A DNA stretch of 64,000 bases from NCBI GenBank assembly GCA_943704425.1, contig CALSCP010001507.1, forward strand, positions 665-64,664. Direction: 5' to 3'. Positions 17,519 through 23,481 of the stretch are shown piece by piece (the first letter of the stretch is position 1; each line of letters begins with the position of its first letter). The stretch is from Ministeria vibrans ATCC 50519. Its lineage: Eukaryota > Protista > Filasterea. The position numbers and the translations under genes are program-made. Under the pieces are notes generated by a model. That model was not told where the DNA came from. It saw only the letters and a list, made by a program, of their open reading frames with translations, and made no database searches.

Positions 17519-18471
17519 CCATCTTCGAGCTCGACTTCTTCCGCACCAACCCCGAGCCCTTTTGTACCCTGGCACGCTCGCTGTATCCGGGCGAGTTCAA
17601 GCCGACGCCGTCGCACTACTTTATCAAGCTACTGGCACTCAAGGGGGTGCTGCAACGACACTACACACAGAACATTGACACGCTGGAGCGGGAGGCGGGT
17701 GTGCCTGACGAACTGCTTGTCGAGGCACACGGGTCGTTTCACGCTGCCAGCTGCATCGACTGCGACAAGGAGCACTCGCGCGAGTATGTGCGTGAGCGCA
17801 TTTTTGCCGACGACACCCCCGTGTGTGTTCATTGCAATGGTCTTGTGAAGCCCAACATTGTCTTTTTTGGCGAGTCTCTTCCCGAGCGCTTTCACAAACT
17901 AAGCCACAGCGACCTTGCCCAGGCGGATTTGCTCGTGGTCGCCGGCACGAGCTTGCAGGTGCAACCGTTTGCATCGCTTGTGGGTCGTGTGGGCGGGCGT
18001 GTTCCGCGCGTGCTCATCAACCGTGAGAAGTGCGGTGAAGGGCCATACAATGGATTCAACTTTGAGGGTTCGTTGCAGCGCGACATTGCACTGCTGGGCG
18101 ATTGTGACGAGGGTTTTCGTCGTCTTGCTGAAGTACTCGGGTGGGCAGACGACTTGGAGAGGTTGTGTGGTCGAGGAGAGGAGGTGGGAGAGACGGAAAC
18201 AGAAGAGACGGAGACAAAAGAGACGGAGACAGAAGAGACGGAGACAGAAGAGACGGAGACAGAAGAGACGGAGACAGGAGAGACGGAGACAAAAGAGACG
18301 GAGACAAAAGAGACGGAGCCAAAGAAACTCAGTGAGAGCGACGACACGTCAACGACAGTTGAATCGGCTGTAGCAACGAAAGCTGGAAAGGACGTTTATG
18401 ATGATGATGTGGATAGCCTGACAGAGAAGCTCGACACTGTTCAATTGGAGACGAAACCTGAAAGCCAGTGA
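17519..18471 (+). CDS. SIRT2: Class I sirtuin (SIRT2-like), 3' exon
   Basis: AIFELDFFRTNPEPF..LYPGEFKPTPSHYF, HYTQNIDTLE, EAHGSF, CxxC...CxxC, KPNIVFFGESLP, GTSLQVQPFASL, LINRE, GDCD. Confidence 0.93.
18189..18318 (+). repeat. Coding 15-bp tandem repeat (GAGACGGAGACARAA; ETETE/ETETK) in the sirtuin tail
   Basis: About 8-9 near-identical units. Confidence 0.9.
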
Positions 18472-18570: not shown

Positions 18571-21152
18571 TTACGTGGGCCACACGGGCCGAGGCAAAGA
18601 CCAAGCAATGGCTGCCTCATCAAAAGGCCTCCAGACCCTCAGTTTTGCCGTGGACCACGACGAAACATCTTGGTTGAAGCTGGCAGCGTCAACAAACATG
18701 TACTGCATGCTCTCTACCGAGGATGTGTCCCAGGCACCAATGTTTTGATTGAACAGTGGAGCGTTCCAAAACATCCGGGAAAGATCTTTCACCTGCCGGA
18801 AGAATATAGAAGGAAAAATGTTTGAGGCAAACACTTCCAAGAAGTATACCGTACATTCGTGGTGTTCCACAACTCAAGGCCTTCACCACGAAAGGAGTCT
18901 GCGCCTTCAAACATGCTTTTGAACGAAATCACCTGATTAATGAAGAAAAAGAAGAGAAAAGAAATTAATCGAAGCCTGCTGACAAAGTGGAGGAATAGAG
19001 GGAATATCGTGTACGAGTTATTGTCGCTCCCAATTCATAATAATTATAAATAATAATAAATGGGTTGTATTCTCTTCTCTAAATAATAATAATAATAATA
19101 TTTTTATAATTATAATTATATCGTATTGTTTTCGAATCAATTACCTTGGCTGTGTTCCACCCAAGTCGCTGATTGAAAGAGACTGCGCCCGAAAACATGA
19201 ATTTCAAGTTTTCAAAATTCTTCGTGTTCCACTCCAACGGTTGATTAAAAGATTTAGCCACGTGGAACATACTGTGCACACTCCTGAGCGAGTCGGTGAT
19301 CCAATCCAAGCGCTGATTAAATGCAGTATTGAAAGCAAACATACTCTCACTGCGCTCCAAATTTGAAGTGTTCCATCGAGATATGTCACGATTGAAAATC
19401 CCTTTGTAGAACATTCCGCCCATCGCTTGAACCTAATTATAAGGAGTGCGAGAAGAGAGTTTTAGTTTCCTATTCACATTCTGTTGCACAGTTTTTCCCC
19501 ATTCAGTTGGTCATATTTGTTGTCCTTGACGTACGCTCGAAACATCCCAATTGCCGATGAAACCATTAAAAGTTGAATTTGCAAACATGTGCGCCATGGT
19601 AACGACCTGAAAAAGAGTGTGCAAAAAATGACAGAATACAATTAAGAATAAATAATTGGTATCATAATAATTATTATTAGAAGAATAATAATAATAAAAT
19701 TATTATGATTGTGATCATTGTTAAGACGTATATTACCTGGGAGGTATCCCAAGAATCGAGAGAATTTGCCTGAAACGACGAAAACTCAAACATGCGCGAC
19801 ATGTCCTGAATAGTTGAGACGTTCCAGTTGGCTAGAGCGTCCACACGACCGAGCAAGGTGGTGCCGGAAAATGCACCTTTCAGCGTAGTGGTCGTGCTCA
19901 AGTCTGGCACATCAATTGCTGAGATTCTCATGTTGTGTGCTCCCTCAAAGTAGTGGCCGTCGCAACCAGCGTAATTACCAAGCTCGATAGGTCCCCATTG
20001 GCGAACATCAACGAGGTGAACTATGTCGGCGTTTGCTCGGATGCCCTGCACGCTACCCTTGAGGGTGACAGTGTGAACGCCAGCTGCGGCATATGTGTGC
20101 GTCACGGCTGCATCAGCAGCGCTTGTAATGATCTCGCGCGGTGTGCTGTCTCCAAAGTCCGCCAGGAAGTTGTAATTACCGTCGAGGACGAGCGGCAACG
20201 CAATGGTTTGATCGGGAGACAGAGTTTGGTACATGAGGATTGTCTCCGGTAGCGCGCGTTGGACAGTGACTGTAAATGAGCAGACGGCTTGGTTGCCAGC
20301 AGTATCGCGGGCTGTGAACGTCACGGTTGTCTCTCCAACGGGAAAATCCCAGCCAGAACTATGCGTTGAGGTAAGGGAGAAAACACGATTGTTGTCACTC
20401 ACGTGGGGCAGTGCGTAATAAACCACACTTGACTCGCCCATGCTGAGCGTTCGCACGACACTCCCCGGACAGCTTGAGAGCACAGGGGGAACTGTGTCGC
20501 AACATCGCACGTCAATAGCACACGAGTTTACTCTTGGTGAACACTACATCACATACAAAAGACAGGTGAGTAGTGAGAGCACAAAAACAAATACATTATA
20601 ATCATGACAAATATTTAGAAGGAAAATAATATTTTAATAACATTCAACAACAATAAAAAATATTTCAATAATAATAATAATTATTATTAATTATTATTAT
20701 ATTTTTTCTTACGTTTTTCAGGTCGATCTCGCAAAAATCTCCCGCAAAATTGGTGTAACATTTGCAAACTGCGGTTCCGTTGACGTCTTGGCAAGCCCCT
20801 GCGCCAACACGACACGGGTTCACCGAAGGCATGCACGGTCGAGCTTTCTCACAGAGCTCTCCATGAAACTGGTAAGGGCAGAGACAAATGAACGAATTCG
20901 AAAGAGCACTGACGAGGCAGGTTGCTCCATTTTGACATTGATTGGAGCTACATATTTTCCCCTCATTCAATTGCTGAGCAACCATACGATACATCGTATC
21001 CTTTAGTCCAGCAATTTCCATAGCAACATCCGTGTTTTGTTCACTGACGGTGGCTTCAAGTGAGGTCAGGCGTGCGGGTATCTAAAGATGAATTTGAAGT
21101 TTAGGAATCCATGTAGAAGAAGAAGAGTAATAATAATAATAATAATAATAAC

Positions 21153-21216
<64 letters not shown>

Positions 21217-21219
21217 GTA

Positions 21220-21261
<42 letters not shown>

Positions 21262-21269
21262 GCGAAAAA

Positions 21270-21303
<34 letters not shown>

Positions 21304-21309
21304 GAAAAA

Positions 21310-21349
<40 letters not shown>

Positions 21350-21355
21350 GAAAAA

Positions 21356-21398
<43 letters not shown>

Positions 21399-21800
21399 GA
21401 AAAAATAATTATAATAATAATAATAATAATTAGTAATGATGTCATCAATGCCAAGAACTGAAGACTATAAAGAAATAGAGAAGATCCCTTTTTTCGAAAT
21501 TTAACGCGAAAACAAAGCAAACATAATCGACCCTGTCGACTTTTATGGGTTTTTCCAAAACAGCACCTTCTCCGCGTTATCCGCCAAAGTTTCGAGAAAA
21601 ATGTTCCGGCCGTTGTAAAAGATCTTCCCGAGATGCGGGTCCATGCGAACGGTGCGAGTGTCATCGAGTGTGGAGAACTCAAAATATTCCGCCGACATTT
21701 TCAAATTCTGCTCAACACCTCTTCCAATCGCAACGCTGTTAGGATCAGCAGCGGATAACAGAGAAAAGCAAAAGATAATCGTTGCTACAATAAACAACAT
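18571..21800 (-). CDS. Secreted mosaic protein: cubilin-N-like region and coiled coil, 2 EGF, HYR, PKD-like, DUF285/BspA-type repeats; no transmembrane helix
   Basis: Signal peptide MLFIVATIIFCFSLLSA; KICSSNQCQNGATC; DTVPPVLSSCP...FPVGETTVTFTARDTAGNQAVCSFTVTV (HYR); DFGD..THTYAAAGVHTVTL; repeated FNQxIxxWDTSxVxxMxxMF. Confidence 0.85.
21128..21430. repeat. (ATA)n intronic microsatellite
   Basis: Visible directly in the sequence. Confidence 0.95.
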
Positions 21801-22004
21801 GGCGGAAATCCCAAAAAAAGAAAAAGAATGATAATTAATATAAAATCGTCCAAATCGAAAACAAGAAAGAACTTCGACAAAAGTCGGTTCGACAAAAATA
21901 AAGTATTATTATTATCTCAAGCTCTCAATTCCAACACCACTCATTTAAACATTCTGGCCATTTCAGCACAGTATCCAAAGAAGCATAAGATAAAGTTGCG
22001 CGTA

Positions 22005-23009
22005 ATGGGACTTCTGGCGACTATCGTTCTGACCTTTGCAACTGTGGCGGGATCTTCGCCTCTTCGACCCGTTGCGAGTCCAAATGTTATCCTTCCTATT
22101 CCCTGGTCACGTCTTTCTTTCAACCATTCACTCTCTCCTAACTTTTGCACTACAGTCAACTTGTCTTCTCTGGTAATCAAAAGAAGACAAATTGAAAAGA
22201 AAGGGAGACTCGACCAAATTTTCGACCATTTTCAATCAGTTTCCATAATAAATGAAGCATAATAATACACTGCGCTCAAAATCATTTTTTTAATTACCGC
22301 TTTCTTTCTTCTTCAGGGTTTAAACGGAAGTGTTGCCATCAACGCGACACATGCCCCAGCGCGAGTGGAAAAAATTCAGGCTCTCGGAAAAATTCAATTT
22401 ACCGAACCAGGCGCGAAACTTTCTTTTGGTAATTCGTCGTATCTTTCCGGCTGCCAGTCGTGTGCTTCGTCGCCTTGTCATAACGGGGCATATTGTTTTA
22501 ACCGCGAGGGAAGCCAGTTCACTTGCGTATGTCCCGTCTCATTTACGGGGGCGTTGTGCCAGCTTGAGGCACCATCAAACGCCTCCGCAAACTCCAATTC
22601 GTCACCAATCACCATCGGAGTTGCCGTTGGTGCTATATTGGTATGTTGTGTTGCTTTGGCCCTTGCTACAATCTCAAGACGACGACGCCATGCTCGGGCG
22701 AGAAACAGTGCGANNNNNNNTGCTGAGTGTTCCGAGGGTCGTACAGGAGGGTCTCCGTCAAGTCACTCGGTTCCTTCTACCTCGACGCAATTCCAGACGG
22801 ACACTCTTCATTCAATGGGCAACTCAGGAGTAGCAACTGATAGTGCAACAGCAGCATTAGCGACTGAAAACATTGCAACGACGATCACGACAACACCACA
22901 ATATCTTCAGCTGCTGCAGGAATTGATATCCTCTGTGAACATACTCAATAAGGCGACGTCATCGAAAGAGTATCTTAACAATGCGCTGCAAACAAGTTCA
23001 GATATTTAA
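22005..23009 (+). CDS. Small type I membrane protein: amnionless-like beta-helix segment, 1 EGF, transmembrane helix, tail (gap at 22714-22720)
   Basis: Signal peptide MGLLATIVLTFATVAG; phase-0 intron; PARVEKIQALGKIQFTEPGAKLSFG; CASSPCHNGAYC EGF; TM ITIGVAVGAILVCCVALALATI then SRRRR. Confidence 0.75.
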
Positions 23010-23481
23010 ATATAAAAAAATGTTGCCTTATTCGGAGTGAGAAGAGAAAGTGAAACGAGAGGAAACAAAACAACTAGACTTTCAAACGGAAATGACCCGA
23101 GAGCAGTCCATGGTACCACGAATAGTCTGATACACCCATGATAGACCTCATAGAAGTGCATGGAAGGACACAGAGACACAGAGCTTGTGTACAGCAGTCT
23201 CGGGCGCTCTATATTAGCTGAAAGAGAGCAAAAGAGAGAGAGCGGGAGAACTTAAACCTCGCTCAGAATGCACTGGCGTGCCTCGAGAATGGCTTGTAAC
23301 GCGGCCAAAACACATTTAGAAGGCAGAATGGTGCGCCTCCGTTCTGTTGTGACAAAAATTGCCGCACTGAAGACAAACACGACGACACTCGTGCGGTAAG
23401 CTGTTGTGCGTCTTCTCAACATAACAAGTGAGTTACAACTTACAAGTCTGACAAGTCAAAAATCAAAATTAACTGTTTTTC

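Follow-up and report, generated by a model that had tools for sequence, protein, structure and literature searches.

A head-to-head gene pair of Ministeria vibrans encodes a BspA-type repeat protein and an EGF membrane protein with no demonstrable relation to cubilin and amnionless

Two genes with signal peptides, here named gene A and gene B, start head-to-head within a 64,000 nucleotide stretch of the genome of the filasterean Ministeria vibrans ATCC 50519 (assembly GCA_943704425.1, contig CALSCP010001507.1, positions 665 to 64,664 of the forward strand; this whole stretch is the window, and positions below are those of the window). The original prediction was that the pair encodes a pre-animal cubam, the receptor formed by cubilin and amnionless. 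If true, this would date the cubilin-amnionless endocytic receptor before the animals and would be a notable finding on how nutrient uptake arose in animals. For this gene pair a pre-animal cubam is not supported by the evidence, and neither protein is demonstrably related to cubilin or to amnionless. Since no test ties the pair to these two proteins, it is probably an ordinary pair of divergent neighbours, two independent genes sharing a short divergent promoter, with gene A encoding a secreted, probably oligomeric, binding protein and gene B an orphan EGF membrane protein. Gene A is one of about 30 proteins of this genome that combine a stalk with EGF, PKD and DUF285 (BspA-type leucine-rich-repeat) domains. 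Gene B is an orphan type I membrane protein and one of very many EGF-bearing transmembrane proteins here, the genome having 2,000 to 2,900 first-look candidates for EGF-bearing genes. No literature on cubam before the animals was found.

The models of both genes were made by eye and match, base for base, the spliced RNA contigs of three RNA-like runs, X7 and X9 from one study and X14 from another. The observation of the gene pair is real, because spliced RNA contigs from two studies reproduce every junction. The ATG of gene A is at 21800 on the minus strand and that of gene B at 22005 on the plus strand, and the 204 bp that had been given as the distance between the two signal-peptide genes is confirmed by these positions. 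Gene A, with 7 exons, encodes approximately 689 amino acids, and every intron is GT..AG and in phase 0. The 308 amino acids of gene B, counted after an assembly gap is bridged, come from 2 exons. Both genes are transcribed. The strings quoted when the pair was first described (FEFST, LGKIFYNGRNI, KICSSNQCQNGATC, SFICLCPYQFHGELC, PARVEKIQALGKIQFTEPGAKLSFG, SGC and YLQL) are all present.

Protein searches were conducted exon by exon, with a Pfam threshold of E<=10. In gene A these identified two EGF domains (E 1.8e-7), one HYR domain (3.6e-19), a PKD domain in exon 3 (2.4e-6) and DUF285 repeats in exons 3 to 7 (3.8e-8 for those in exon 3), with no Pfam family matching the first 78 residues. The genome as a whole contains 82 DUF285 matches on approximately 35 contigs. 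There is no second hydrophobic segment in the gene A sequence and no C-terminal anchor, so the protein must either be secreted or be kept on the cell by a partner. An AlphaFold2 (AF2) model of the mature exon 1 product, built with three relatives and having a predicted local distance difference test (pLDDT) score of 70, contains strands at residues 14-17, 21-25 and 30-34 and a helix at residues 37-59. The helix reaches the end of the model and is carried on by some 42 heptad-like residues of exon 2, so that short strands followed by a long coil is a fair description of gene A. The architecture that had been read from the sequence, lacking a transmembrane segment and running from short strands to coil, EGF and HYR/PKD/DUF285 modules, is thus borne out by Pfam, by the AF2 strands and helix and by the sequence. 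The same is true of the statement that HYR, PKD and DUF285 stand in the place of CUB domains, which in cubilin form the array that binds ligands, as Pfam finds a CUB domain in no exon of gene A. The only CUB matches in the genome are in a 2,656 amino acid open frame on another contig (G000:C408:110773-115132).

It is most improbable that the N-terminus of gene A is a single helical Sel1-like repeat rather than a set of strands. SEL1L is the top PDB match for exon 1 (phmmer, E 0.0025), with GRGVEQN...A..YF and LGK.Y..G among the aligned residues, but each of the aligned stretches alone has an E of 14-15, and it is the matching of a single unit of the query to two repeats of the target that inflates the total. 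The Pfam Sel1 family has no match at the threshold used, the AF2 model gives strands for residues 14-34, and the IG.GVEQ...FST motif of this region is common to paralogues in which the sequence continues as strand-like repeats.

At its N-terminus, cubilin has a hairpin and an intertwined trimeric beta-helix of three turns, after which comes a coiled coil (PMC6283879). Gene A is like cubilin's N-terminal part (residues 36-131; 6GJE chains B-D; PMC6283879) in being secreted without a transmembrane segment and in passing from short N-terminal strands through a long helix to EGF domains. It differs in having 2 EGF domains where cubilin has 8, in having no CUB domain and in having no detectable sequence relation. 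The claim that gene A has a cubilin-like N-terminus finds no match by sequence or by fold. Exons 1 and 2 of gene A do not match cubilin (residues 26-135, 6GJE chains) in a phmmer search of PDB at E<=10. When the AF2 model of exon 1 was searched with Foldseek, only weak unrelated matches with E of approximately 1 or worse were obtained. VIA-align gave the same model a best Z of 4.4, with PUR/Whirly/COMM-type folds. Cubilin is absent from the top 50. EGF domains directly after the coil are present in gene A, and this feature is generic. The best PDB relatives of the exon 2 EGF domains are those of Notch (4e-15), and across genes A and B the EGF matches are Notch and Delta at 1e-15 to 1e-20, without cubilin. 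The supposedly cubilin-like motif KICSSNQCQNGATC...SFICLCP is likewise a generic EGF consensus, with no cubilin listed among its matches.

At least 28 other genes of the genome carry an N-terminal module (alignment A1; loci L062-L091) consisting of a signal peptide, a conserved strand unit of approximately 35 amino acids and a 25 amino acid coil, after which come EGF domains, PKD-DUF285 or other domains. The consensus of the strand unit is roughly NDDGDIVL.PA.N.SV...GDL.VNG..V.TE. Examples are L082:1549-1728 and L062:1516-1695, with others on contigs C1674, C2642, C1564, C1613, C1412 and C1813. The module corresponds to no Pfam family. In a set of 1.84 billion representative proteins it has just 61 matches at E<=1e-3, and several of these are open frames of this genome itself. 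Among these 61 there is no cubilin and no protein of cubilin length with an N-terminal match. Likewise, neither of the module profiles A1 and A2 finds cubilin in PDB at E<=10.

The AF2 model of the module is a hairpin, a second hairpin and a helix, with a pLDDT of 81. When this model is searched with Foldseek, ranks 1-3 of 350,542 chains are taken by the three chains of cubilin in 6GJE (E 0.47-2.2, TM-score 0.38). A scan independent of Foldseek places 6gje_B at rank 1 of 48,161 chains (Z 3.3, root-mean-square deviation 4.8 A). In this match 58 of the 60 module residues are aligned to residues 42-104 of cubilin, and no other top match extends over the strands as well, the lower-ranked fold matches mostly aligning the helix alone or fewer residues. 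On the evidence of the model, the cubilin N-terminus is the best PDB match of the module and has been found as such twice, but the match is far from significant. What remains of the proposed likeness to cubilin is this weak similarity at the level of the family, seen by two aligners; it is not seen by sequence profiles or with gene A's own model. The human cubilin strands (GNLVF... and GKIKLN) resemble GNLVL... and GKLLLNG of the module, a resemblance that serves as a lead and not as a test.

Tandem repeats in fibre-like proteins are matched by the strand unit of the module too, a hint that the unit belongs to the type found in trimeric beta-helix fibres. One metagenome protein of 420 amino acids (P0136) contains five tandem copies resembling the strand unit and a C-terminal endosialidase-chaperone domain (Peptidase_S74, 6e-11).

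Common descent has also to be weighed for the stalk itself, in that the gene A N-terminus and the stalk module might share an ancestor with the trimerizing beta-helix and coiled coil of cubilin, without gene B needing to be amnionless-like. This is rather unlikely. The first ranks of the 6GJE cubilin chains in Foldseek and in the independent search are consistent with it, as are the position and order of the module, which are those of cubilin (signal peptide, strands, coil, EGF domains), and the tandem repeats of the strand unit in fibre-like proteins, which fit the described resemblance of cubilin to phage spikes (PMC6283879). However, the scores given above are weak and the aligned identity is 16-20%, the profiles do not retrieve cubilin from either PDB or the representative proteins, gene A is loosely tied to the module and its own model does not retrieve cubilin. 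In addition, where trimers are intertwined, models made from the monomer are unreliable.

The tie between gene A and the module is of several kinds. Compared by hhalign with alignment A1, exon 1 reaches a probability of 10% and alignment A3 one of 7%, both of which are weak. The first 26 mature residues of gene A have 46% identity to the N-terminus of a gene on contig C1374 (E 8e-5 for the pair), and a relative of that gene, on contig C31, bears the module motif NDGDLVL. The domain order of stalk, EGF, PKD and DUF285 is the same in gene A and in paralogues such as that on contig C2642. With moderate confidence, gene A can be placed in a single architectural family together with the module genes, as a member that has diverged.

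Gene B encodes a signal peptide, a unique ectodomain of 85 amino acids preceding a single EGF domain (Pfam E 1.8e-7), a 13 amino acid stalk, a transmembrane segment, an RRRR stop-transfer sequence and a 133 amino acid tail. The description of its product as a small type I membrane protein is upheld by the signal peptide, the transmembrane segment and RRRR. In amnionless, by contrast, the ectodomain (residues 20-357) combines a pair of beta-helices with a Cys-rich region and a SEA domain, and a transmembrane helix follows it (PMC6283879). Gene B is like amnionless (PF14828; 6GJE chain A) in being a type I protein with a signal peptide and in being encoded beside a stalk protein. The two differ in that the amnionless ectodomain is approximately 340 amino acids, whereas that of gene B has 85 unique residues and one EGF domain, and in that the amnionless tail has two FxNPxF endocytic signals.

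The proposed amnionless-like nature of gene B finds no match with the Pfam model or in PDB sequence searches, and does not agree with its size, architecture or tail motifs. Its exons match EGF alone in Pfam, with no match to PF14828 (Amnionless) by hmmscan at E<=10, and this contig also yielded nothing when the whole genome was searched in six frames with PF14828 at E<=1. A phmmer search of PDB with gene B at E<=10 found Notch and Delta EGF domains and not the amnionless chain 6gje_A, and the 50 residues of exon 2 before the EGF domain, searched alone, found nothing at the same threshold. The PARVEKIQALG...SGC likeness on which the comparison to amnionless had been based is short, is interrupted by a gap and is scored by no tool. 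Homology of gene B to amnionless is therefore unlikely. Nor were relatives of gene B found elsewhere. There is no homologue of comparable length (126-402 amino acids) in a word-indexed search of 5.8 billion protein clusters, no usable match in the protein atlas and no paralogue of the ectodomain among 96 fetched loci.

The assembly gap lies within gene B, where 7 N at 22714-22720 stand for 73 real letters that are in frame in both DNA and RNA contigs. It is filled by contigs of runs X9 and X1 and by a stray 294 bp contig of the assembly (C514, the same as L033), with 25 codons replacing the 3 codons interrupted by the gap. The filling keeps the frame, therefore the YLQL (YxxPhi) motif, which had been noted in the tail but lay beyond the gap, belongs to gene B. 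In the full 133 amino acid tail, with the gap bridged by C514, there is this single YLQL and no FxNPxF or NPxY. In run X7, which has another strain label, the gap version is 21 letters shorter and still in frame, thus the tail of gene B is polymorphic in length.

An amnionless-like sequence is hinted at elsewhere in the genome. A large EGF protein (L095, G000:C2362:41290-41911, minus strand) opens with two related units containing NW..(I/L)PCSG. The first unit has a sub-threshold match to Pfam Amnionless (model positions 10-78, E 0.004), and its top PDB match is amnionless 6gje_A, which at E 0.6 is not significant. Thus the N-terminus of this protein weakly resembles beta-helix 1 of amnionless. 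The NW..(I/L)PCSG motif is common in bacterial beta-helix adhesins. The pieces of gene B show no similarity to these units (shuffle p 0.13-0.99).

The pairing of A and B had been taken as meaningful, but this neighbour does not recur. A divergent EGF or transmembrane open frame within 1.5 kb upstream was found at 0 of the 28 paralogue loci, using the same script that detects gene B here. Some observations do weigh against an ordinary neighbour pair. The contig depths of the two transcripts are similar in three RNA-like runs (50.7/55.9, 70.6/66.1 and approximately 6/5), but the depth of contigs reflects expression poorly, and co-regulation cannot be established from it. Lacking its own anchor, gene A would need a partner to act at the surface. 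The cubilin N-terminus is also the top PDB match of the paralogous stalk module by two aligners, so gene A may yet assemble as cubilin does.

On these grounds the pair could be a functional analogue of cubam without common descent, in which A oligomerizes through its N-terminal strands and coil, the small B ectodomain caps A or holds it at the membrane, and the two, under one promoter, make up a surface receptor of anchor and stalk whose BspA repeats capture ligands or prey. The genes are head-to-head across a shared promoter region of approximately 170 bp or less, are both transcribed and have the similar depths described; B, being a type I protein with a YxxPhi motif, could supply the anchor that A lacks; and in both ectodomains there are strand-rich unique regions beside the EGF domains. 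This is nevertheless very unlikely, given that the arrangement is missing at the 28 paralogue loci, that the unique gene B ectodomain lacks relatives that co-vary with it and that a single YxxPhi in a tail of 133 residues is expected by chance. It is quite unlikely, too, that the module of the at least 28 secreted proteins, possibly with a diverged copy in gene A, is a true distant relative of the trimerizing beta-helix and coiled coil of cubilin, and so a pre-animal, reusable cubilin stalk with an open beta-helix end that needs a membrane cap, supplied by gene B or by the EGF protein of contig C2362.

The ordinary neighbour pair is therefore the preferred explanation. Under it, the N-terminal strands and a helix of approximately 65 residues probably make gene A oligomeric, the EGF, HYR and PKD modules would serve as a spacer, and the BspA-type repeats, judging by the annotation of their family, would be the binding end for ligands of the cell surface, the matrix, or prey and bacteria. 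There would be no functional link between A and B.

The closest known systems to gene A are of other kinds. The BspA/DUF285 leucine-rich-repeat surface proteins of bacteria, archaea and some protists are like gene A in its PKD and DUF285 repeat body, and the body of paralogue L082 matches thousands of bacterial and archaeal BspA relatives, with E down to 1e-207. Gene A differs from these in having spliceosomal introns, which all interrupt the repeat at the same place and in phase 0, in having EGF, HYR and the strand-plus-coil stalk in front of the repeats and in having no bacterial sorting signal. Collectins, ficolins and proteins of the tenascin/angiopoietin type share with the predicted organization of gene A an N-terminal oligomerizing coil, spacer modules and a C-terminal binding domain, and some of the paralogues carry another C-terminal domain instead of DUF285. 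Unlike the collectin-type proteins, gene A has no collagen region and has a different head domain. The trimeric beta-helical fibres of phages and giant viruses, with their Peptidase_S74 C-terminus, resemble the module in the tandem repeats that its strand unit matches, although the module has one unit only, followed by a coiled coil, and no chaperone domain.

The exons of gene A are all on the minus strand. Exon 1 (21567..21800) encodes 78 amino acids, a signal peptide of approximately 18 and an N-terminal region of approximately 60. The 123 amino acids of exon 2 (20713..21081) are the heptad-like helix of approximately 42 amino acids and the two EGF domains, and the 269 of exon 3 (19737..20543) are HYR, PKD and the first DUF285 repeats. 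Single DUF285 repeat units are encoded by exon 4 (19535..19606, 24 amino acids, Pfam E 0.002) and exon 6 (18855..18932, 26 amino acids, Pfam E 0.046), with further repeats in the 96 amino acids of exon 5 between them (19145..19432, Pfam 1.8e-20). Exon 7 (18571..18792) encodes the last DUF285 repeats in 73 amino acids (Pfam 1.2e-18) and a stop, the coding sequence being 18792-18574 and the stop ending at 18571. The joints seen in RNA contigs are 21567/21081, 19604/19735, 19430/19533, 18930/19143 and 18790/18853, and the exon 3 region is present in the RNA contigs as pieces within 19735-20543.

Gene B is on the plus strand. Its exon 1 (22005..22172) encodes 56 amino acids, these being the signal peptide and the first 39 amino acids of the unique ectodomain. 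After a GT..AG intron (22173-22316), which is supported by RNA contigs, exon 2 (22317..23009) encodes the other 46 amino acids of the unique ectodomain, the EGF domain, the Ser/Asn-rich stalk, the transmembrane helix, RRRR, the 133 amino acid tail and the stop. The 3' untranslated region is 23010..23036, with a poly(A) site after 23036 based on a loose poly(A) end in run X7.

The AT-rich sequence between the two ATGs (21801..22004) is presumably a bidirectional promoter with two short 5' untranslated regions. The 5' end of gene B RNA is at approximately 21956-21960. For gene A, RNA contigs reach no further than 21785/21786, which is 14-15 nucleotides short of the ATG at 21800, leaving the first codons of the signal peptide outside RNA coverage. 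These ends sit just after a possible splice acceptor (...ttattgtAG, minus strand), and one of the contigs runs on for 28 letters found neither in the window nor elsewhere in the assembly. If in frame, the 28 letters would place a positively charged stretch before the hydrophobic core. They could represent an alternative first exon, an unassembled first exon or a chimeric contig. Because the RNA contigs stop after a candidate acceptor and one carries these unassembled letters, the true first exon of gene A may differ from the one that starts at ATG 21800.

In the DUF285 region of gene A (window 18791-19736) there are four introns, all RNA-confirmed, in phase 0 and located after W-[DN]-x-[ST]-x of the repeat. 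This shared position suggests either duplication of the repeat after intron gain or exon-wise expansion of the repeats. The exons of gene A are approximately 50% GC. Its introns have a much higher AT content and are filled by long (ATT)n/(AAT)n microsatellites at 21111-21443, 20660-20710 and 19073-19124. Convergent with gene A is an exon of sirtuin-2 type (17647-18471), the two stops being 100 bp apart. This neighbouring sirtuin has an acidic (ETET)n tail, and its best relatives are the SIRT2 proteins of animals, fungi and choanoflagellates at 50-60% identity, none being near-identical. These relatives are in keeping with an opisthokont-like protist, though they do not prove one, and the proteome of the organism is apparently missing from the named databases. 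The assembly, which is eukaryotic and compact, has 29.7 Mb in 2,860 contigs, and DNA of the stretch also occurs in algal-culture and seawater metagenomes.

The locus thus provides a well-documented eukaryotic, intron-bearing BspA-type repeat protein in which the repeats are joined with EGF and HYR modules. It also draws attention to a lineage-restricted N-terminal stalk module, the best structural match of which is the cubilin N-terminus, and which bears on the source of the unusual head of cubilin.

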